Assembly (NCBI GenBank): GCA_047495785.1
Contig: JBLDXI010000013.1
Location: 2,170,001 to 2,234,000, forward strand
Direction: 5' to 3'
From: Lepidodermella squamata
Taxonomy: Eukaryota; Animalia; Gastrotricha
Length of the DNA stretch: 64,000 bases
The notes under the pieces were generated by a model. It saw only the letters and a program-made list of their open reading frames with translations, was not told the DNA's origin and ran no database searches. Below, one piece after another: positions 3,942 to 63,000 of this stretch. A program made the translations under genes and the position numbers. Numbering within the stretch: the first letter of the stretch is position 1; the number at the start of each line of letters is the position of its first letter.

Positions 3942-6862
3942 TCACTGATGAAAAGCCACTCGGGATTTGTTGCTGAATTGATGTAATGCTGACAATTGCT
4001 GGGAAGTCACTGCTAAACAAGGGGGTAAATTAGGCATGCAAGAGGAAAACTTTTCAATTCTCCCACCTACCTGGCCTGTACGGTTTTGTCGTTGCTGCAG
4101 CTGTGGTCGTGCTAATGAAAGGGTCTGGAGAGAACGGGGATAATGAATCATTAGTAAATTAAATTAGTAAATTGATGGGTTTAAGGTACTCTGATCTCAT
4201 CTGGATCTAGCGAAACTAAGGTGGTAACAGTTTGGATTTCATTAAAAGTTGTGTAGCTACTGATTCTATCGCTGGCTGGCTTATTTATAGACGCTAATTA
4301 AACGGCCGAAAACTTACTCAGCAAATCGTAAAATCTAGCGACTCGGTCGGTAGATGCCAGCGATTCTGTTGAAACTCGGCAAGCGACACGATAATCATTT
4401 TCCAGGCGATTTCTCACGATTTGTGAGTAGATTAGACGGCAATCAGAGGCGTTGAGCATATAAAGTTCGGGATAATTTGGCACATTTCCATCGGCGTACG
4501 ATGGCTGGAAAGTCGTGTAAAATGACCATTCGTACTTGAGATTCTCAGTTTGAGGGCAAATCGCCGCACTGCAAGTAAAAACGCAGTCGCCTTGTTTCGC
4601 GAAAGGGTAAGTCACTGAATCATTTGCTTGAATGACTTTGATATCTGAGATTATAGGATCGAATGAGAAGTTGACTTGAAAGGGAACCCGGTCAGTTTGG
4701 GTCCCTGCCAAAGTAACGACAGCTGTAGCCTTGATGGCACAAATGCGATTTTGAACAAGATTTTCGCGAGTGAAATGATAGCGGTATCGATTTCCGGCAG
4801 GCCAAACCCTAAAATCGGGTTGTAAGAGACTTAGTGGAACCAGTGAATCCACAATTATCTGATTGGTCGGGTGGTTTCGAGTCTGTGATTGGTTGGTTGG
4901 TTCGAAGAGCACGCGACACGTACCATTTCTTCTGTGATTGCATTTTCTATGATCTAGTAGAGTGGATTCCACTTAGAAGGTAGGGTTGTGACTCAGTGGA
5001 CGAAGCGTCTGATTAAGTGTCTGAAGATGAGAGGTTCGACTCTTAGCAGCTTCGAAATATTTTTAATCCAGAAGTAATACCAGTAAGGAAATATAAAATG
5101 TAGCAGTACACTTCTCAGTCTCAGCCTGGTTAGCTCAGTCGGTAGAGCATGGGACTCTTAATCCCAGGGTCGTGGGTTCGAGCCCCACATCGGGCGGTTG
5201 TACATTTTTGGCCAATACGCATGTATGCGCTTTGAAAGTTAGTTTTTTTAGTTCAGCTTTAAAATTTGGATTAGCTCAAATTGTGGAGCGCTCGCTAAAC
5301 ATTCGAGAGGCAATGGGATCTGCACCCGTATCCTACAAACGATTTTTTTGCCACGAATGCTTCGGCAGCTTAAATTTGGGACTGAATGGCCTTCTAAGCC
5401 AAAAGGGAAAGTAGCTTAGTGATAGCGTATCTGCCCAGTTAGCAAAATATTGAAGGTTCGATCCCTCTAAGCCTTGCTCGATTTTTTGCGATGAGCAGTG
5501 ATTTTTGCAAAAAACCTCACTTCAAAGCAAAACTTTCCCTGACCGGGAATCGAACCCGGGCCGCCGCGGTGAAAGCGCGGAATCCTAACCACTAGACCAT
5601 CAGGGAGATGTGAAATTAAATGCTTGGATTATGTGATCAATTTTCAATAGCTTGTTGAAATTTAAATGAAGACAAAACGAGTGGGCCCGTTCGGGAATTG
5701 AACCCGAGACCTCTCGCACCCGAAGCGAGAATCATACACCTAGACCAACGGGCCTGTGATAGAAAACCCCCATGGGCTTCTAACATGGCAATTAGGATAC
5801 GCCAAAGACAGCGCAAAAAGGTACGCCGAGACCCGGGATCGAACCAGGGACCTTTAGATCTTCAGTCTAACGCTCTCCCAACTGAGCTATCTCGGCTAGA
5901 TGGCAGAAGGGTAATCACTTACCGCGACATTTAATATTTTAAAATCGCAGAAAATAATTAAATGGTGCGTTTCGCGTGCTCTTCGAACCAACCAATCACA
6001 GACTTGAAACCACCCAACCAATCAGATAATTGTGGATTCACTGGTTCCACTAAGGAGAATGAAATAATACGCAGATGATACGAACATACCCGATCTGAAA
6101 ATTCGCCGGACCTTGACCGTCTTCCACAACAAAACTATAAGTTCCATTACTAGGCGAAAATTCAGGAACGGTGAAGGAGAAATCGCTGCCGTACGGTGGA
6201 GGGAAAGGGTTGTAACCTCTGCCTACTCCGATCGCAATTTGACAGTCTCCAAACCGCAGATCAATTGTTCCATTGTAGGCGAAAGTATCTGCCCCACTGA
6301 ACCCAGTAAGTCGTGAAAGAGAAACGGGAGGAAAATCTGGAGGGTCCACATCTACGCTAAGGATCCTTGGATTGACTAAAATAAAGAAAATAAGGAACAT
6401 AAAAACAAGCCGGTAACACCTAATTGAATTTACCTCCAATGTTGACATTGTTCGCGTATGACGAATTTGAAGTTTTATAAACAGTCAGAGTGTCCGAACA
6501 GAAGCCGTAGTAGTGATCATTGATTTTGTAGGATTGCCCGTTGAAACGTATCGACGAAGGCTCCAGTGTCACATAGCCAGATTGCGGATTGTTAATGCAA
6601 GTAGCGCCAATGAAACAGGTATTAGGAGTAGTCTTCTTAAAAATTAACATTCCAACACAGGGAGGTGAGAATGTAAATGTAACAGTGGAAGTTTCTCTGT
6701 AATTGATCCATTGCGGCTGGACAGTGATATTGAAAACAGCATTTTGTGCTAAAACAAAGGGTTGAATGAACCTTTTCTAGAGTAAGGATAGCAGCGCATA
6801 CCTGTGACGATTTGTCCCACACATAACAGCAACAGCAGCGCTACAAAAACGGGCGGTTGCAT
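3942..6862 (-). CDS. Multi-exon secreted protein made of the unrecognised N-terminal module shared with the 48066 and 60040 LDLR-like genes; no LDLa repeats or TM segment seen
   Basis: ATG at 6862 gives MQPPVFVALLLLLCVGQIVT. Exons encode ITVQPQWINY..FTFSPPC, VNPRILSVDV..GTYSF and CVFTCSAAICP..YMLNASDC..YRVACRV..FYDLL, all aligning with the paralogs. Intron 6089->4809 joins in frame (FQIG|GVWPAG). The 3' exons below ~4310 and the stop at 3942 are tentative. Confidence 0.7.
4982..5054 (+). pseudogene. Degenerate tRNA gene (Arg-like body)
   Basis: tRNA-length segment with A-box-like tgactcagtgg, gcgtctga, gaagat and B-box ggttcgactc. Stems are broken; a T-run follows. Confidence 0.55.
5124..5196 (+). 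tRNA. tRNA-Lys(CTT)
   Basis: GCCTGGTTAGCTCAGTCGGTAGAGCATGGGACTCTTAATCCCAGGGTCGTGGGTTCGAGCCCCACATCGGGCG: canonical 73-nt cloverleaf, TTTTT downstream. Confidence 0.95.
5265..5337 (+). pseudogene. Degenerate tRNA-Ala-like gene
   Basis: ttagctcaaattgtggagcgctcgctaaacattcgagaggcaatgggatc resembles eukaryotic tRNA-Ala(AGC), with a mutated anticodon loop, T-loop and acceptor stem. Confidence 0.7.
5405..5476 (+). pseudogene. Highly degenerate tRNA gene, isotype unclear
   Basis: A-box-like tagcttagtgatag and B-box ggttcgatccc at tRNA spacing, in register with the ~141-bp period; T-run downstream. Confidence 0.5.
5535..5606 (-). tRNA. tRNA-Glu(TTC)
   Basis: Reverse complement TCCCTGATGGTCTAGTGGTTAGGATTCCGCGCTTTCACCGCGGCGGCCCGGGTTCGATTCCCGGTCAGGGAA, 72 nt. 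Confidence 0.95.
5683..5754 (-). tRNA. tRNA-Pro(CGG)
   Basis: Reverse complement GGCCCGTTGGTCTAGGTGTATGATTCTCGCTTCGGGTGCGAGAGGTCTCGGGTTCAATTCCCGAACGGGCCC, 72 nt. Confidence 0.93.
5824..5896 (-). tRNA. tRNA-Phe(GAA)
   Basis: Reverse complement GCCGAGATAGCTCAGTTGGGAGAGCGTTAGACTGAAGATCTAAAGGTCCCTGGTTCGATCCCGGGTCTCGGCG, 73 nt. Confidence 0.95.
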
Positions 6863-12533: not shown

Positions 12534-12835
12534 CATTGTGTTTGAGGTTGTAAGTTGAAAAAAATCCGCACGCTGATTGGTCAGTTGGCTCGTATCCATG
12601 ACTCCGCCTTGCTACTTGATCGTGCGATCTATATAATTTGTGGCTTTTATTATTTTTATGAAGGCCGTATCGTAGCACGCGTTTCCAACAAATGCGTAAA
12701 ACCATTCATAAAAAGATATTTTTTGCAAACATTTTATGGATCGCACGATCAAGTAGCAAGGCGGAGTCATGGATACGAGCCAACTGACCAATCAGCGTGC
12801 GGATTTTTTTCAACTTATACAACCTCAAACACAAT
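12534..12835. mobile_element. MITE with ~95-bp near-perfect TIRs
   Basis: cattgtgtttgaggttg...gatcgtgcgatc (12534-~12630) is the reverse complement of gatcgcacgatc...cctcaaacacaat (~12738-12835). Confidence 0.85.
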
Positions 12836-13160
12836 CATTGTGTTTGAGCTAAATAGTTGAACTTCTGGGCGCGCGCTGATTGGACAATCGATAGTTGCTA
12901 TGACTCCCGGATGAAACATGTTGGTCGTGCGATCCATGAAAGTGTTTTTTGCCGCAGTAAATTACTACGATTATTATGGGGTTTACGCTCATTGTCAATG
13001 GAAACCGTGCAGAGGGTGTGGCAAGGTCATTTTAGCATAAATAGAAAATAATTTATTAGTGGATCACACGACTAAATTGTTTCATCCCGGAGTCTTAGCA
13101 ACAATAAATTGACCAATCAGCGCACGGGTCAAAGATTAACTTACTACTTGAAACACAATG
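12836..13160. mobile_element. Second, related MITE with more diverged TIRs, directly abutting the first
   Basis: Starts cattgtgtttgag and ends ttgaaacacaatg. Internal gctgattgg...gactcccggatgaaaca is mirrored by tgtttcatcccggagtc...ccaatcagcgc. Confidence 0.8.
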
Positions 13161-18357: not shown

Positions 18358-19335
18358 AAATTTATTTATTTTATTTATTTAAGAGCTTAAGTCCGTAGCC
18401 GAACGCTCACAACAATGTTAATCGGGCAATCCACTCATAGCCGGCAGAAAAATCAGAGTCATATTCAGTCCGTTTCAAATTCCATTTGTTCATTTTGGTA
18501 GTGATAATACAAAACAACAACAACAATTGGCTCCACATTAACGTTAAAATTAGAGAGAATGAGATGTAAGGTAAGCTCATATAAAAAGTTTCTATTAAAA
18601 TTTACAATTTTTGGGACGCGTTTGAAAACTGGAATGGCGCATCGCCGAGAAGGTAAAGATATACATTTTGTCGACACTCATGCGCTGATTTCGATTCTTG
18701 TACGTGGCGAGGCAAAGCATTCCAAGCTACAGCTCCTTTGAAAGCGAGAGTTGATTGAGCACGTTTGCAAGTGAAAAATGGCACTTCCAAAGCTTGGTCG
18801 AAATAGCTGCGTAGGTTGCGTGGTTGTTCTTTCGATTTGAACATATCGCGCAAAGTTGTAGGCGCTTCTTGGTTCAAGCATTTCCAAACCATTGTGATGA
18901 TGTGCACTTTTCGCTTGCCCGCCATGTCAAGCCAACCCAGTTGATTTTGCATTTCGCTAGGGTCAGCCGTTCGGTCTTTTCGTAGGATGATGCGCATGAC
19001 TCTGTTTTGGACGGATTGAATAGCTTTTAGATTGCTGTCAGACGCCTGGTCCAAAACTGTGTCACAGTAGTTCAAGTGACTCAATACTACTGCGTTAGCC
19101 ATCGTGACCAAAGATTTCCTGTTCAAGTGTTTTGAAGCCATTTTAAGAGCGTAGGTACCTCGGTTCGCCTTAGCGCGAACTTCGCTGATGTGCGTTTTCA
19201 GGAGTAACGCATTGTCCAACGTTAACCCGAGAATTTTCATGGTCTTCGAATCTGCAAGTTTCACACCTTCGACTGTCACTTCGATGTTCGGTTTCTTTCT
19301 CTTGGTTGAGAGGACCAGTAGTTGAGACTTCTGGT
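18358..19335 (-). mobile_element. 5'-truncated L2/CR1-group LINE (C-terminal ORF2, 3' UTR and (TAAA)n tail)
   Basis: ORF 18602-19279 has KILGLTLD..L, VLSHLNYCD, IQSVQNRVMRIIL, QLGWL and G..AWNALP. (TTTA)n at ~18360-18380 forms the minus-strand tail. Confidence 0.85.
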
Positions 19336-36012: not shown

Positions 36013-36528
36013 TGCTTCTATAGTTACTATTGATGCTTTTAGTTCCGTGGATTCTAAAATATTTATTTGTTCTCAAGATAAATTATAAGTGGACAGCGGT
36101 TAAGAAGAGTTGTGCATCGTTGCCGTGTTTATCTAATTTGACACAACCTGTACTACGCTACTGCCCAACGTTCTGCCCGAAAAGTAATCATAATCCGATT
36201 AAAAAGTTGCTCATGTGTGCGTTGAAATTTGTTTGGCCGCGTGAGATAATAATTTGCTACGTGACGTGCGTCGCATTTTTTTCTCTTCCATATAGGTAGC
36301 CAAAATAATGCGGGAAAAAGATGTTTTTGTTGTCAACTTCCAGTGCGTTTGTTTTCTGAGGCTATAATATAGGCATTAAGGTGAGAAAGAAACAAAGTCG
36401 TAAAAATTACGATAATATTAGCACTGTCGCTAATTATCATTATAACAGCAGTTTAGTTTATTACCTAGTCATGTGCAAAAAGGGCACGGTTACAATGTCC
36501 GTGAATCACTTACTTACTTCACTTACAT

Positions 36529-36584
36529 TCACTTACTTCCTTGTTTTACTTGATTTAAATCAAGTAAAACAAGGAAGTAAGTGA
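36529..36584. repeat. Perfect 56-bp spacerless palindrome
   Basis: tcacttacttccttgttttacttgattt|aaatcaagtaaaacaaggaagtaagtga. Confidence 0.9.
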
Positions 36585-36685
36585 GTGAAGAGTAAACAAC
36601 ACTTTTTAAGGTTATAATTTATGCAAATGTCTCTTGATTCTAAATCAAGTGAGAAATAGAAAAACAACTTATTTGTAGACGAAAT

Positions 36686-42722: not shown

Positions 42723-42799
42723 GATGGGCTCGGTCTCTCATAGAAGTTGCACAACGGCATTAGTCCAGTTGGAAAATTACAATAATAATAACATGACAC

Positions 42800-43733
42800 T
42801 TGACTGTTAACAAGTGAAAAGTGGGGTTTGACGATTTTTCTATATTTTCCAGCAATTCGCAAAAAGGGTGTTGACTTTAAGAAGGACGAAATTCCAAAAT
42901 GGCTTGCGGAATTTCAGAACTCTAGGATGCTCCCATCCTCCTTAAAAAAACGGGAAAACGTGTGTTGCTTAAAAGTGTTAACGATTGAGGTTGACGTGGA
43001 GACACCAGCTTGATACCGCCAAATTTTCCGAATATTCAGTAAATTTCCTCACCTCAGATTACCCTAAAAATGTGTCGACTGCCAATAAAAAAACATAAGT
43101 AGAACTTATGAAGGGCAAAATAATTTATTAATTGAGGCAATAAAAACTAAATTTTTTATGCGCAATTTTTTGGAAATGATCTGTATAAAGACCAATTTGT
43201 CAGCCAAGCTAGTGACTATTTATATTTGTCTGATATAGCACGAGTAAAGAGTCTATATCTGAACGGAGCCGGCCGAGATTTACGAATCGGAACGAGTCGC
43301 AGACGAGTGGAGATGAGTAAATCGAGTACGGCGAGTTCAGATATAAACGATTTACGAGTGCTGTATCAAAAAATATTGCATGAGCACATCTACTAACACT
43401 ATATTTTTGAAACGAATGCTATATTTGTATGGTATGACATGAGTAAAACGTTTATATCTGTACGGAGCCGGCCGAGATTTACGAATCGAAACGAGCCGGA
43501 GGCGAGTTGAGATGAGTAAATCGAGTACGGCGAGTTCAGATATGAACGATTTACGAATGTTATACCGTAAAATATCGAATTGTCATAGCGACTCGACCTA
43601 TATTTTTGACGACAATTCTATATTTATTTTTGATACCTTTCGACTACTCGTTGATTGATCTTGAAAGCGACATCAAATTCTCACCATGTCAAAAAAGTTC
43701 GCCAAACTCCATTTTTCACTTGTCAACTGTCCA
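42800..43733. mobile_element. MITE (family shared with 53038-53578) containing a nested insert
   Basis: TIR ttgactgttaacaagtgaaaagtggggtttg / caaactccatttttcacttgtcaactgtc; internal blocks are colinear with the 53038 copy. Confidence 0.8.
43231..43566. repeat. Two direct copies of a ~135-bp self-complementary unit nested in the MITE
   Basis: 43231-43368 and ~43433-43566 share acggagccggccgagatttacgaatcg..gagatgagtaaatcgagtacggcgagttcagatat; the ends of each unit are inverted repeats. Confidence 0.8.
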
Positions 43734-44608
43734 TTCTAATTTGGCAACTTCGGTAATGTCTGAAGAGGTTTAGCATTTTTAGTTGTAAATAAAATTTATT
43801 GGTGCGCTTTTGTGCTTTTTTAATAATCCTCCCTATTTAAAATTATATTATGGAGTCACAGTTCGCAGTTATAATGTTGTTATTGAATTAGATGTGGGTC
43901 ATCGCGGAACATGCTTCGAGCGTGGGAGAGACAACCCTTCCCACAACTGCGGAACAGTTACTTCTGAAATTACAACAGTTGCCTCGACGGAAGTTCACTG
44001 CTGCGGTAAAAACGACCGCAATAGAGGTGCAAATTAAAACCACTCGCCCCGCGATGAGAACGCGACACATCCGACATTTTGAAGGATGCAAACACACCTT
44101 TCATGTGGATATTGATCACTTTTTGCCTGTTACAACAGTTTAACCTCGCAATGATGCCTCAGCCGTCCCCAGACGAGCCAATTTCGACGTGGGAACTCAG
44201 ACACTACCCTTTCGAGGAATTACCTCAGAACCTGCATTAATTAACCTTAGTAACAGCTATATCATTCGCCATGTCCCTAGAGACTTTCGATCTCGCTACA
44301 TTTTTATAAACATTCAGGATGTTATCGAGTCAATCATCTAGATTACCTAAACGAGAAAACTGCACTTAAGGGAAGACAAACACGGCGGTACAAAATTTGA
44401 ACTTCAGCGAATAAAATGGAATAAAACTTTTCGAAATGACTTTTTACGATCAACATTTATAGCTGATTATAAAGAGCATACACATAGGCAGCGGTGAATG
44501 AGTAAAGGCAATCATCTGAAATTGAAAGATGATACCTCGCTCTAGCCAGCAGGTCTTGCGAAATTCTTCTTCAGATCCCCCTCATGACATTATCACGTTT
44601 TTAATACG

Positions 44609-48065: not shown

Positions 48066-51000
48066 ATGAAAATATTACTTATTCGGTTAACATTTACCTT
48101 ATTAACAATCAATTTATCAAACGCTGCGAATGAACGGTTGAGAATCAGCGTTCAGCCGCCTTATATTGATCTGTCTCAGCCGAATCCTGGCGCAACTGTT
48201 ACTTTCTACATCTCCGCCTATTGCCCGGCGTCTTTGAGCATTTTCAACGAAAAAACTGGTCAAGTTTTAATTACGCAGGAAAACGTGACCGAAAACACGC
48301 CGCTTCGACTTGACAGTGTTTCTGTCACCGCTAACGGATTCTACATTGCGATTTGCGTCCTGGCTAATGGGAACGATAATTCGAATATTACGACGATTTT
48401 TAGAACTCGGCCTGTCGAGCTGAAAATCGGAGCGAATCCGCGTATTTTAGCCATCGATATTCGGCGGGGTAGTAGCTTGGAGGCGGACGCTTTCTACAAT
48501 TTATCGCGAACTTCAAGTGCGAACTTCCAGGACCATTTCAGCCTACATCGAGCGACGGAATTCGTGCCGAATTCAATTGATTTCGGCAATTATGACCATG
48601 TCGCAATTTTGGTGACAGTCGCAACTGGTTTAGATACATCGGCTGGGAAATCCGGGGAGAATAATATCATTCTCTCAATTCCTCAATTCGATCAAAATGG
48701 AACTTATAGCTTTGTTCAAAAGGGACCTCTTATCATGCGAAGCAACAAAACGTAAAATATTTGAAGTACATAATTCCCGAAAATTTTATCTTGATTTTTG
48801 AAGGGATGGAGCAATTATGGTATTTACCTACACATTTCTGTTGAGCAAGAACGATCTCGTCGCTTCAGGACTTTGCTACGTCGAAGGGACTGCAATTGCA
48901 TCGTTTCGCAGTTCGCCAATAATTCACGATCGAGTCACGTTCCGCTTCGAAATGGCCTACGACCCCTCGGTGTCGTCGATAATTGGTTGGCTAAATTTTC
49001 CCGAATAATTAAAAATTATTAACCCAACTTAATTAGTTGATCGATCGCCTGATGGCAAAGATTCATGCAGCTGTGTCTTCACCTGCAAAGCTGCCGGTTG
49101 CCCTTCGGATAAAATAGCATCCTATGAATGGGCTTTCTACGACCTGCCAAGTGATTCCGAGCAAGACTATGAACTAAGTCATTCTGACGATTACATCGAC
49201 CTGGGCGATGGCACGATTTCACCGAAAAAGCTCAATTACGTCCCGGGCAATCTTGCCCGGCTTGATCAATACATGTTGAACGCTTCAGCCTGCCAAAAAC
49301 TCTACGATAGCATTATGAAAAGCCACGAGGCTAATTCTTATCGAATCAGCTGTCGCGTTGTGTCATCCGGGAGTTCGAGGGAGTTTCTAAGCACCCTGCC
49401 TAGTGGCGTCTCCGGGCTTCAGGTTAAAGCGGCTTCGAATCATGCGAATCTTTACGAATTGCTGCGGCCGTGTTCGGTCGATGAGTTTCAATGCGTGAAA
49501 TCGAAGCAGTGTATACCTGTGACTAAGGTTTGCGACCAGCAGTCTGATTGTATTGACGGGTCGGACGAAGACAGGTCGGCTCGGAACTGCACGCGGCAGA
49601 TCAGCTTCCTTAACAACATCGACTTCAAATGCCCTTATGGGCAGTTTCACTGCAAAAACTCAAGTGAGTGCATTGGTAAAATTTTATTGCTTGAATAGGG
49701 TGAAATCAATTCACGGAACTATTAAGGTGGGTTTGCAAATAGCACGGACATATCTGCCCATACCTGTGGGTCAGCAAGTTTTGAAAGCGGGATGAAGCTA
49801 ATTCAGATAGACTAAAGCTATAATTGGAAAAGTCCTATGATCATCCGAGACGCTCTACTGAGCATTCGGGCAGGCGCAGTAGCATCCTGGGCGGACGGTG
49901 TAGTCGGATGAGCTGAACTCGATCGTTGTTTCGTTGGGCTTGAAGAAACCAGCACCGCCGTGCTCAGGGCGACCTTGTTGTTGACGCTGGTTGTTGCTAC
50001 CGGCTTGTTGTTGGCGAGCACCCTGCTGCTGGCTATTGGTCTCGTTGAACTTGGGCATATCGGCGCAGTAGCACACGCATTCGGCGTATCTCACCCACTG
50101 GGGAGCCGGCATTTCGGGCCTGGAGGAAGAGGATGACGCGTCGACTCCAGCTCGGCCGCTGAAACCGGCAGACAGGCGGCCACCTTGAACATTGCCTCGG
50201 TTGTCAGCGAAAACGCAGGCAACGGCCAAAACAGCAGAAATGATCAGAACGCGAGACATGCTTGAGGATTAGAACTTTTTCAGTTAGTTGAATGTAGAAG
50301 TTGAATTGTTGCTTTGATTCGATGATGTGGATGAGCTGAAATCTGCCGGTTATATAGGAAAATTTGTCTCGCTTGACCTGGCGCCTCCGCCAAATATTTG
50401 TAGTAAACACTCCCTCTTGCCCACGTTTCACTATAGTTTTTTCTAAAGGCAACTCACAACTATGACGTGCACGAAGTTTTTTCGTGTAAAATCTTATAAT
50501 TTCATCAATGAAAAGCCCTATTAGTGTTCATCACGAATGAGTTTATAATATGGTAGAAATTACGTTTCCGTTATCTTTCGAGGTGTGGGAAGGGTAAATT
50601 CACCTCATTTTTGTTGCCAATTTTTCAGAGGAATGCATCCTTATGTCGAAAAAGTGCGATTTCATCCAAGACTGCCTCGACAATTCGGATGAAGACAACT
50701 GTTTCCGCGACTCTTGCTTAGCCGATCGCCAATTTCGATGCAAAAACGGGCAGTGCGTGAGTCACGACTCGGTCTGTGACGGGCGAGCCCAATGCACCGA
50801 TAAATCCGACGAATCCGACGACTTGTGCAAGTCGTGCGATCCAGGCAGCCGAAATCCTGACATGTGGCGATGTCTGTTATCCGAAAAATGCGTTCACACC
50901 AGCCGGCTATGCGACGGCCGGCAAGACTGCGGCGCTTCAGACGCATCGGACGAATCAACTGAGGCGTGTAAAGAGGCGTTCCAACTTCAAATTTCTCGAG

Positions 51001-54000
51001 ATTTCGATAAATGCCCAGCTAATACGATCAAATGCTCGACGAGTTCGATTTGCGTGCCCGTTACAAATGTCTGCGACGGAGTACCGCACTGCTGCCCTGA
51101 TTTCGCGAAATTATTGTCTAGTCACGGTTATAATGGGACTCATTATGGCGATTGTGAGTCTACGGACGAGATTGGTTGTGAAACTGGACAGTGCTACCCG
51201 AAAAACGAATGCGAACAGGTAATTATAATTTTTTTCTAATTTTTCCCGAATTTTTAAATTTTAGTTTTAATTTTTAAATTTAAATTTTAAATTCTTAATT
51301 TTTTTTTAAGAATTGCGTTAGTGTGAAATTGAGAACGGACCACTCAGTTTGCGGCTCTTCAAACAGCCAGCCTGGTCATTACTGCTCTTGCAAACGTGGT
51401 TTTCAGCGATCAGTGTCAAATTTCAGCGAATGCCTCGATATTGACGAATGTTCATCTCCCTTATCGAACAATTGTTCGCAAATTTGTGCCAATACTATTG
51501 GAAGTTACGAGTGTTTGTGCAGCATTGGTTACGAAGAAGTGACCTTGCAGCCTAATAACACAATTCCAGCTGGTATCAGTTGCCGATTTCCTGAAAAAAT
51601 CGACCCGCACATCGTTTTCATCTACGCTGATTCGATTCGGCTATTAAATGGGTCAAAGAACCAGGTCATCGCCCACTCTTCAAAGTTGGGCCAGGAGATC
51701 GGGGTATTTGAGAGGTTTTACATTCATTTTTTCGAGATTAATGTGTTTTAAACAGGCCATGGATGTTGATATTCGAGATGGCACGGTGATTTATGTGGAA
51801 ACTGGAACTTGGAACCTTCGCCGAACTGCGTTGCCGATTTTTTCATCAGCCGAAAATTCCGACCATAGCAACATTCAACCTCCTTCAATTTCCCTCGCGA
51901 TTCCGAACGGATTCTTTCCGAATATTATCGATATTTCCATCGATTTTATCGGCGATAATTTGTATATTGCTTACGTGAAAGGCGAGACTAACCGAGTAAG
52001 CGTTTCGCTGGCGGATGGGCGTTACCCGAAAACGATTTATGAGAGCCATTTGAACGAAATTACGAGTATCGCTGTCAATCCTCTATTCGGACGACTCTAC
52101 ATCGCAACCTACTCGAAAGCTGACAATAAATTGGTGATTATTTTCTCGTCCATGGACGGCGATACAAGTTATGATAAGAAAATTTTCGAAATGAAAATTG
52201 AGGAATTCGGTTCGAATATGATTGCGCCAAGAATATCGGCGATCAGCATCGACTTCCCTGCCGGCCGGCTTTACTTCTCAATTTCTTGCGAAGAAAGCGA
52301 TTTTACAGCTATTTATATCGCCAACTTTGATGGATCTGGCTTGGCGCGACTTGGCATCCACCGACTGAATCCCGTTCCGAAATCGTTCGACGTTTACCAA
52401 GATTCTATTATCGGAATTTTTTCGTCGATTTTCTCGGAGAAGCCTGATGGTTTATCTTATGTTGCCGAAATCGACAAATTCGGGAGGTTGAGCTCGAATA
52501 GCGGTAAAGGTGGCAATTTAACTGGACCGCTTGTGACCGGCCAAGTTAGCCACGTTCGAGTTTTCCATCCTTTGAAAGCCGGATTACTGCCCAATGCACC
52601 GTGCGATGCCTTGAAATGCTCACATTTGTGCCTGCTCAAGTCAAATGGTAGCGCCACCTGTGCTTGTCCACAGGGTGTTTCTCTCATGGCGAGAAATAGG
52701 TCAAAATGCGACACTGCCGTTGTTATTAAACCTCCGCAACACCCTCGTGATTGCCTTATGAATTGCCCTCAGACGAGGGGCAGGTGTGTTAAGGTGGCCA
52801 ATAGCCAGGAAGATGTATTCGTTTGCAAATGTTTCGAGCCTTACTTTGGACCTAGCTGCAACTCGACTAACCACAAAGGATTCGTTCCACCGATGGCTAA
52901 ATCAAAGCTGAAAAACCAAAATATGGTAAATATCGATTTTTCTTCAATTTTAAAAATTTCAATAGATTTCAAACAATTTATTTTGAATTTCGTAAAAACG
53001 AAAAATATAAGAAATTCATTTTGGAATAATTTTGCAATTGACCGTTAACAAGTGAAAATTGGGGTTTGGGGAATTTTCTGTAATTTTTCCAGCTAATAGA
53101 AAAAGTGTGTTGACTTGAAGAGGGACGATTCATGGAATCCTAGATGTTTTTAGTCAGTTTCCCTAAGGATTTTGAATGCTTAAAATCAGACGTCTAGGAG
53201 GCTCCCATCAACCTCAATAGACGTCGATTGAGATTGACGTGGAAGCATTATTCCATCAAAATTTTTGAACATCTAGCAAAAGGTTCCTCACCTCAAATTT
53301 CCCTAAAAAATCTCGACTGCGCATAAGAAAATAACACCAGAATTTTTTTCACGACTAATTAGATATGAATTGATGCAATAAAAAAACTATAATTTTTAAG
53401 GCAGCACTTTTCGAAATGAGAAATTTTACCCGTGATGTTTGAAGCCCATTTTTTGAGTAATTCTGCTGACTATCAACCTATTTTTGATATCGTTCGACTC
53501 TATAGTTCATTGATCTTGAATGCGGCATCAAAATCTCAAAAATTTCGCCAATCCTCTTTTTCATTTGTTAACGGTCAATTTAATAATTAATAATTGCTCT
53601 CAAAAATGAGACCTTATACCAAAAATCAAAATTTTAAAATGTTGAATTTTTTTAAATTTTTTATAAAATTCCCAAAATTATGAAATTAAATTTTTGGGCA
53701 AAATTAATTGACTCGATATTTCTTTGAATTAAATGTGTAATAAAAAATACTTCATTGTATAATTTTACAGACCTTACCAGCTGATAATTTTACGAATGAA
53801 TCGGAGCTCAATGTTGCGGCGAAAACGTCATCTCAACGGCCTTTCGTTTTGATAAGTCACCGAGCAGTCGGCAATTACATGGGATACTTCGTGTCCGTGA
53901 CCATTCTCGTCGCCCTAGTCGCTTTTCTCCTGCTCACCCTACTCGCGATTGCTTGCTATAGGAAAGCAACGCGCCCTCATCGCGCAACTTTACCGACGAA

Positions 54001-60039: not shown

Positions 60040-63000
60040 ATGATATTGCCAATCTCTATAACAATCATTGTTATAATCAATAAAGGTTGATTTGATAAAA
60101 AAAATTGATTCGTGATCTAAAAATCTGTTTTCAGCTTTCAGTCAAACTACCAATGTCGGGCAGCTGACGATTTCAGTTCAGCCATCAATTTGGATCAACT
60201 ACACGGCAAATGCAACGATTACTTTCTCGTTCGATCCACCCTGCCCTAGCGCGTCGATTTTTTATAAAACACAACAACTTCGGGAAACTTGCGCTGCCGG
60301 GCCAGCTTGCCCTGGGTCGCAATTCTTCCCAGCTTCAACAGTGACATCAGAACCTTTCGGAGCTTGGATACGAGTTACAAATGTTAACCCAATGATGAAT
60401 GGTTACTTTTACGGAGTTTGCGGCTCGAATGGTCGAATTTATCGAACGCCCAATTCAACGAATGAAACTGCTGCGAATCTACTGATCGGCGTTAATCCTC
60501 GCCTGCTGTACATACGAATTTTCGCTGAAACCACCTTGGTCGCTAATTTAACGCGAATAGTCTCGGCTGATGGTTCGAGCGATCGTTTCATTCTGAATTC
60601 GTCGATTGTAAGCGCCGTTCCGTTGACTGGCTACAGCTACCTAGTTGTTTGGTTTGGGGCTGGGCGAGGGTTGGATCCAAACAATCGAGGCGACCCGACG
60701 AGGTCAACTTTCCGATTTACTGTACCGGCTTTCGATGGCGTCAGCGGCAATTACTCCTTCGCAACGAAAGGGAGCCCATCTCAACTATAGTAAGATTCAC
60801 TAAATCCGTTCCTAATATAACTTTGTTATCTCAGTGATGTAACACCCTATGGGGAATGGAACCAATACGTCATAAAGACGAGCGATCTAGCGAGTGCGGG
60901 GCTTTGTACAGTTGAGGGTACAGCGTTCTCCTATCTTCCTGGCGCTCCAGTCTCAGACAAAGTTTATTTCAAATTCGATGTGATCTACCCACTCAGTGTA
61001 GCTGCCATTACTGGTACGATTAATGGATGTTAAGACCTATTTCAGACATTATTTTTTTGAATAGTTGACCGAAGTCAGGGATGCTCATGTTTGTTCAAAT
61101 GCAAAACGGCCGCATGCCCTGCTACAACTCCGCCAAGGATAGATTGGATCTTCTTCGATAACGCAACAATCGCTTACCCAACTGACGTATTCTTTGGACG
61201 TTTTTACCACAATTTAAGTGATAAAACCTACTCCAGGTATCCTATCTGCGGGGCAATGTTCCAGGTAGTCCGGACAGCTATTCTATGAATAATTCTGCTT
61301 GCGATGCGATGTTTAAATCAATAATTAGTAAGCGTACCGCCTTGACTTACAACGCAAGATGTCGAGCATCTATCGGTGACTACACGACCTGGTCATACTA
61401 CACGACTTCTGCAATCAATATGCTATCAATGCCTGTCTACGATCTACTACGGCCGTGCCAACAGAGCGAGTTTCAATGCAAAACTAGTTTGATGTGCGTT
61501 CCGCTGATGAATCAATGCAACGGCAGGCCTGATTGTCCGGATGGTAGTGATGAACAAGGCTGTAACTCAGGTGTCTGTAGCAGAGATGAGTTTTACTGCT
61601 CTGGATCAAGTAAGCAATGTTTCGTGACAAATAATTTTTTATTCCTTTCATCTCAAAATCAGAGGAATGTATTCAAAATTTCAAGCGGTGTGACAGCGTG
61701 ATTGACTGTCTTGACAAATCTGTAAGATTTTCCTATGCTCATCTCGCTGAGCTCTGATTTGCTTATATACCACATAAGGACGAAGCGAATTGCTCGACTG
61801 CCTCGACGCCATGTGCTAGAACCTACTTCAGATGTGCCAGTAAACAGTGAGTATAGCAAATAAAATTGAAATTGATATTTGAAATGAATGTTTCCCTTTA
61901 TAGATGTGTTAGAGGAAGGTAAATCTTTCGTTTAGAAGACCGTACTGCCTCTTATAATATCGATATGCTAAGATATGTTTGTGACGACGATGAAGATTGC
62001 GGTACGATTTCCCGACTCTTAATCCTCCCAACAAGAATTTCTTATTATTGTATAGATGACGGAAGCGACGAAAGACAATGCGGAGGAACTGGAAGAGGGT
62101 GAGATTTTTCAGACTAGAGAAATGCGTCTTTGTTGGGAAGAGATCGCTGTCAAGATTTTTCCATGAAATCCGTAATTTTGGATAGCGATTTCCTATACAA
62201 AGTTTCATCCTTTATCCTCCATGGCATGTGATGGAATTATAAAGCCTACCGTTGGGTTTAGGGGACGGCTGACGGCAAGCGATCAGGAACCAGCAGTTCC
62301 GTATATTATTGAGCTTCAATAAGCGATTCGTTTATTATCGAGGATTTCATTATTTTCTTTGAAGGCCTATGGTTACAAACGCTTGCCTAAGCGGTCAATT
62401 CGTATGCAGTAACCAGCGTTGCATCTCTAACTTGTTAGTATGTGACCGGAATAACGATTGCGGAGACAACAGTGTATGTAAAATAATCATTACCAAGCTT
62501 TATCTTAGTATGCCCCTATAGGATGAAATCAGTTGTGGTTCTTACTACTCCGCAACTTGTGGCGAAGATGGGTACCAATGCAACAATGGAAAATGTGTCC
62601 TTTCCTCTGATCTGTGTGACGGAACGAACGATTGCAGTGAGATTTCTTTTCGAATTTCCAACTTCCAACGGCAAATATGTTTGTATTGCGTAGTTGATAA
62701 TAGCGACGAAAGCATCTGCAGCTTTCTGCCGGGTAGCAATCAGGTCATAATAACAACGCAGTCTCCAATCCTAGAGCCACCGAGCAGAGCGTTATGCCTA
62801 CCGGGTTATAGGCGCTGTGCTAATAGTCGATGCATTCTTGGTAGGTTTTTCCTTTACTAGGTTATTTTTGACATCGAAATCTCACAAACCAGATTGCTTT
62901 TTTAAGATTACCAATTTTGTGATGGTTCGAACGACTGCGGTAGGCAAAAATTACATTGCTTTTCTATGTTTTATCTTATCATCGTGTGTAAGGTGACCAA

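Follow-up and report, generated by a model that had tools for sequence, protein, structure and literature searches.

Host DNA held between inverted repeats (TIRs) is the common feature of plant Pack-MULE and Pack-CACTA elements and of the Pack-TIRs of animals, whose capture routes include template switching and whose cargo has a reported median of 224 bp (Tan et al. 2021, PMC8277862). tRNA is mentioned neither in the main text of that paper nor in a review of cargo-carrying eukaryotic elements. Multiplication of tRNA-like genes by mobile elements, with most of the genes decaying, is known from tRNA-derived SINEs, which are retroposed and have a single 5' tRNA head without TIRs, and from the TE-associated tRNA genes of birds (PMC8044555), while Dada transposons have small RNA genes, those for tRNAs among them, as insertion targets, with 6-7-bp duplications (PMC3706591). 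For an Arabidopsis tRNA-Cys cluster that overlaps Helitron annotations, it has been proposed that a DNA transposon captured the tRNA genes, a Helitron call that the authors' own tools did not confirm (PMC10701932). Dense, multi-isotype tRNA arrays on mobile DNA have been described in prokaryotes, where they ride large autonomous replicons, such as linear plasmids (PMC12803027), or bacterial viruses (PMC6409571). In the literature that we searched, whose coverage is incomplete and leaves Repbase outside, we found no published eukaryotic inverted-repeat element with a tRNA array as its cargo, the unconfirmed Helitron link of the one-isotype Arabidopsis cluster being the nearest eukaryotic report.

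Here we analyse a 64-kb stretch of the genome of the gastrotrich Lepidodermella squamata, referred to below as the window, in which an element of 1,225 bp (4830-6054) carries seven tRNA-type genes between two TIRs, in the layout GAGA / CTTAG...CTAAG / GAGA. The coordinates of its parts and of the gene in which it lies are collected in the table.

Table. The tRNA-carrying element and its host gene (positions in the window)
Feature	Position	Strand	Remarks
Host gene	4298..6862	-	four exons, open 390-aa frame, hydrophobic N-terminus, weak Ig/PKD-like features
Host intron 3	4809..6089	-	phase 2, GT..AG, 1,281 nt
Left target-site duplication GAGA	4826..4829		or only GA, 4828-4829
Left TIR	4830..4928	+	99 nt, starts CTTAG, two TGATTGG motifs
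Decayed tRNA gene 1	4982..5053	+	promoter boxes A and B preserved; literal anticodon AAG
tRNA-Lys(CTT)	5124..5196	+	intact
Decayed tRNA gene 2	5265..5336	+	most of the stems preserved, no B box; literal anticodon AAC
Decayed tRNA gene 3	5405..5475	+	promoter boxes A and B preserved; anticodon AGT (Thr-like)
tRNA-Glu(TTC)	5535..5606	-	intact
tRNA-Pro(CGG)	5683..5754	-	fold intact, one change at conserved D-loop G18
tRNA-Phe(GAA)	5824..5896	-	intact
Right TIR	5960..6054	-	95 nt, ends CTAAG
Right target-site duplication GAGA	6055..6058		or only GA, 6055-6056

The two TIR arms are separated by four substitutions and one 4-nt indel, their outermost 38 bp are identical, and the pair occurs only once within the window, where the chance expectation is 0. 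Outside them stands a direct repeat that, from the one copy compared, can be read either as a 4-bp GAGA or as a 2-bp GA within a GA run. An earlier note on this DNA had rightly recognised the inverted repeat pair and the lack of a protein ORF (the longest ATG ORF has 70 aa, and there is no transposase), but had placed the ends at 4834 and 6050 with a TA duplication. TA does border these two positions; the pairing, however, runs 4 bp further on either side, leaving TA inside the TIR and GA(GA) as the direct repeat outside. No inner TIR ends above chance were detected inside the element, and a longer, degenerate TIR reaching to about 4975/5907 was dropped, as 225 of 2,000 shuffles match it. The TIR sequence was not found in the metagenome and viral contigs searched, in which a loosened pattern gave four chance matches, all without a second arm or tRNA.

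The window contains further inverted-repeat elements. Two abutting palindromic, MITE-like elements (12534-12835 and 12835-13160) have the ends CATTGTGTTT...AAACACAAT(G) and, like the TIRs of the tRNA cassette, a CTGATTGG motif within each arm. A third inverted-repeat family is present in two copies (42793-43740 and 53027-53589) with arms of about 45-50 bp that are 77-83% alike, the first of these copies containing a 199-bp tandem duplication.

ARAGORN and Rfam agree on exactly four tRNA genes in the 64 kb, all of them within the element and scoring 50.7-68.2 bits; they are the Lys, Glu, Pro and Phe genes that the earlier note had named. These four are probably still transcribable by Pol III. 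The three decayed genes that it had also described are missed by Rfam and by a three-sequence HMM, yet they fit the cloverleaf register and reach 29, 29 and 27 in a score for stems and conserved bases that is our own and was set after the genes had been seen, the background maximum being 28, with 6 of 125,222 positions at 27 or above. The A and B boxes that two of them keep have two mismatches in total, a state matched by no background site. Decayed gene 1 may be Arg(ACG)-like, gene 2 Ala(AGC)-like and gene 3 Thr(AGT), the sequence itself giving the literal anticodons AAG, AAC and AGT. A possible eighth gene, suggested by an anticodon-like hairpin near 5385-5403, fell below the score cut and would find no space within the 140-bp pitch.

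The cargo is arranged in a convergent layout, with four plus-strand genes pointing inward from the left and three minus-strand genes inward from the right. Measured from start to start, neighbouring genes lie 142, 141 and 140 bp apart in the plus group and 142 and 148 bp apart in the minus group, a regularity that has a probability of about 3e-5 under a crude uniform null. The unit repeated at this pitch consists of one gene, its terminator (a run of at least four T follows all seven genes) and roughly 60 bp of 5' flank, and even the outermost genes retain a full 5' flank, of 53 and 63 nt, beside the TIRs. In its spacing, the cargo thus resembles a piece of a compact, organised tRNA array.

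The state of the seven genes is bimodal: four are nearly pristine, while the other three show about 13-21% decay. Lesions affect 26 of 111 scored features in the three dead genes, compared to 1 of 111 in the Glu, Pro and Phe genes (Fisher p 9e-8), and this contrast stands beside a difference of only about 4% between the TIR arms. This rules out that seven intact genes decayed neutrally and uniformly once they had been inserted here; the decay predates the insertion. Either live genes already stood beside dead ones in the source cluster, or selection or conversion maintained four of the genes in the lineage of the element. Preferential retention of promoter bases was not seen in the dead genes, where 38 of 48 conserved bases are kept as compared to 47 of 63 stem pairs, so that selection acting on the Pol III boxes alone is not indicated.

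The animal has very short introns, with estimates of mostly 50-61 nt in the window, and the host gene conforms to this, its other introns measuring 53 and 58 nt. The phase-2 intron to which the earlier note had assigned the element is indeed found in an open gene of four exons, as are the phase-2 introns that it had reported at the same position in two paralogs, of 52 nt (48752-48803) and 45 nt (60790-60834). Its figure of about 62 nt for the intron after removal of the element had to be corrected to 52 or 54 nt, using the extended ends, with the GT..AG ends retained.

Database searches with the host gene were carried out exon by exon; the joined translation was used for a local frame check and for alignment to loci in the window and to fetched loci. 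Exon 4, when searched against a sequence library, revealed relatives in three ENA metagenome assemblies. The closest of these, with 53% identity over the protein and a shared intron 2 (51 nt), is a probable ortholog of the host gene. Its coding sequence continues without a break where intron 3 would lie, this intron having been lost, which confirms the host splice junction, and there is no tRNA within 6.8-11.6 kb of it. A more distant paralog in the relative has a 66-nt intron at the position of host intron 3. No tRNAs are present at this position in any of the paralogs, from the window or from the relative, or in the ortholog. The element adds neither an AATAAA nor a strong acceptor on the transcribed strand, and the host donor and acceptor are intact, so that the host gene may still splice.

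The host gene and its two paralogs in the window (4298-6862, 48066-49400 and 60100-61400) form a family of apparently secreted, Ig/PKD-like proteins that match nothing in Pfam and whose relatives were found only in ENA metagenome contigs. Their neighbourhood includes an array of at least 13 temptin-domain genes (48-46616), some of which are intronless with Pro/Asn-rich tails and some fused to a monooxygenase-like region. Further features are an ORF at 18602-19279 that, by eye, resembles the 3'-terminal part of a reverse transcriptase from a non-LTR retrotransposon, and a near-perfect 62-bp palindrome without spacer (36526-36587) on the 3' side of a receptor-like gene.

That the tRNA cluster arrived as one unit by DNA transposition, as had been proposed in the earlier note, is well supported by the outer duplication, the restored mini-intron, the empty paralogs and ortholog and the lack of inner ends. 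Since the paralogs and the ortholog are empty and inner ends are absent, the cluster was not a resident of the intron but came with the TIRs. The note had further considered that orthologous introns in relatives might hold the tRNAs without the TIRs; the probable ortholog has neither the intron nor a tRNA, and, as far as they could be checked, neither of the two refuting outcomes that the note had named was seen.

The locus has TIRs, a target duplication with a clean empty site and no transposase, as a non-autonomous TIR transposon would, and its seven tRNA-type genes are non-transposon host sequence between TIRs, as in Pack-TIRs, with which it also shares the intronic insertion. We consider it fairly probable that the element is such a transposon, of the Pack-TIR type, which captured a compact tRNA cluster and was moved by a helper of the CMCT type. 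Template switching, in the course of mending an excision site or a broken fork, would have given an ancestor a compact multi-isotype cluster, most likely at a time when this CTTAG-ended element lay within or close to one of the tRNA arrays of the genome. Mobilisation would then have depended on a transposase provided in trans, probably of the CACTA/Mirage/Chapaev/Transib (CMCT) type. The element inserted as a 1,225-bp unit into an intron of 52-54 nt and left a GA or GAGA duplication. Three of the tRNA genes had decayed before this insertion, and the cargo would mostly be a passenger.

Helpers of the CMCT clade are DDE transposases that bear the motifs C(2)C and H(3-4)H, and the termini of its elements are usually CA..TG (PMC12730594). 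The element shares with this clade the 2-5-bp duplication (here 2 or 4 bp) and long TIRs with internal repeated motifs, whereas its CT..AG ends depart from those of most members; with such ends, and without an enzyme in the element, it cannot be filed in the clade. Weighing against the capture and movement of a cluster by such a helper are, in addition to these ends, the observation that most animal Pack-TIRs are present in a single copy and originate without transposition (PMC8277862), and the fact that a single copy, the only one in the window, was examined.

In comparison with the systems outlined at the beginning, the element differs from other Pack-TIRs in its cargo, a complete tRNA cluster of several isotypes that spans about 1 kb. 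It differs from SINEs in that seven different genes, on both strands and with their own flanks and terminators, lie between TIRs, and from Dada in that the tRNA genes are carried inside rather than being the target, the 6-7-bp duplication within a small RNA gene being absent; identification with either was rejected. Unlike the element, the Arabidopsis cluster is of one isotype, tandem and without inverted repeats. The mobile arrays of prokaryotes are likewise dense and multi-isotype, but here the carrier is a 1.2-kb non-autonomous element of an animal.

Alternatively, the tRNA block could be a working part of the element, its Pol III genes being kept for an advantage that lets copies with the cassette spread preferentially: bound TFIIIC/TFIIIB might hold the ends open or shield them from silencing, or the host might profit from a higher tRNA dosage. 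The nearly pristine state of four genes beside three decayed ones, the tight regular spacing and the full 5' flanks of the outer genes next to the TIRs would fit such a role, but the dead genes show no preference for promoter bases, and the contrast needs no selection on the element if the captured cluster already included pseudogenes or if gene conversion took place; we regard this role as unlikely. We give somewhat less credence to a scenario in which an empty palindromic element of about 200 bp inserted first and the tRNA cluster was copied in on site by gap filling, never having moved. This is the commonest origin of animal Pack-TIRs (PMC8277862), and comparable empty palindromic elements are present in the window. 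Gap filling favours nearby donors, however, and no tRNA that could be the source or parent copy is found elsewhere within the 64 kb.

It is quite improbable that the same cargo is bounded by GTGG...CCAC ends with a TA duplication, as in a Tc1/mariner-like or ESTA-like element. The TA flanks at 4834/6050 agree with such ends, as does the intron of 62 nt that they would leave, given the 66 nt in the relative's paralog, and TA-targeting elements can favour palindromic targets. Yet the two extra complementary bases and the GA(GA) direct repeat would then both have to be due to chance, for which we obtain a likelihood ratio of about 70 against TA, or of 15 if TA targets favour palindromic flanks, and 52-54 nt is closer to the local intron mode than 62 nt. 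Two independent insertions in opposite orientation around a resident intronic tRNA cluster, for which a weak end-like motif at 4962-4973 could be cited, are already largely refuted, given that this motif scores 9, which is equalled in 29 of 60 background tiles, that the duplication flanks the outer ends and that the paralogs and the ortholog are without tRNAs here.

The positions of eukaryotic tRNA genes change at about the rate at which unconstrained sequence diverges; a survey attributes the movement to rearrangement and duplication-deletion, transposition never being mentioned (PMC2888827). An element that carries intact tRNA blocks would be a concrete route for such relocation, and a family of copies would make it possible to test directly whether dispersed tRNA genes are under selection and whether tRNA genes act as chromatin barriers. 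Only tentatively, and with more doubt than confidence, do we consider a family of animal transposons organised around an array of tRNA genes of several isotypes, retained by selection to the benefit of the element or of the host. If this were true, either Pol III chromatin would shield the ends of the element, or working tRNA genes would spread in the host and may seed new arrays, and the family would be the equivalent, in animals, of the mobile tRNA arrays known from bacteria and phages. The element described here suggests how entire blocks of tRNA genes could change their place within the genome of an animal.
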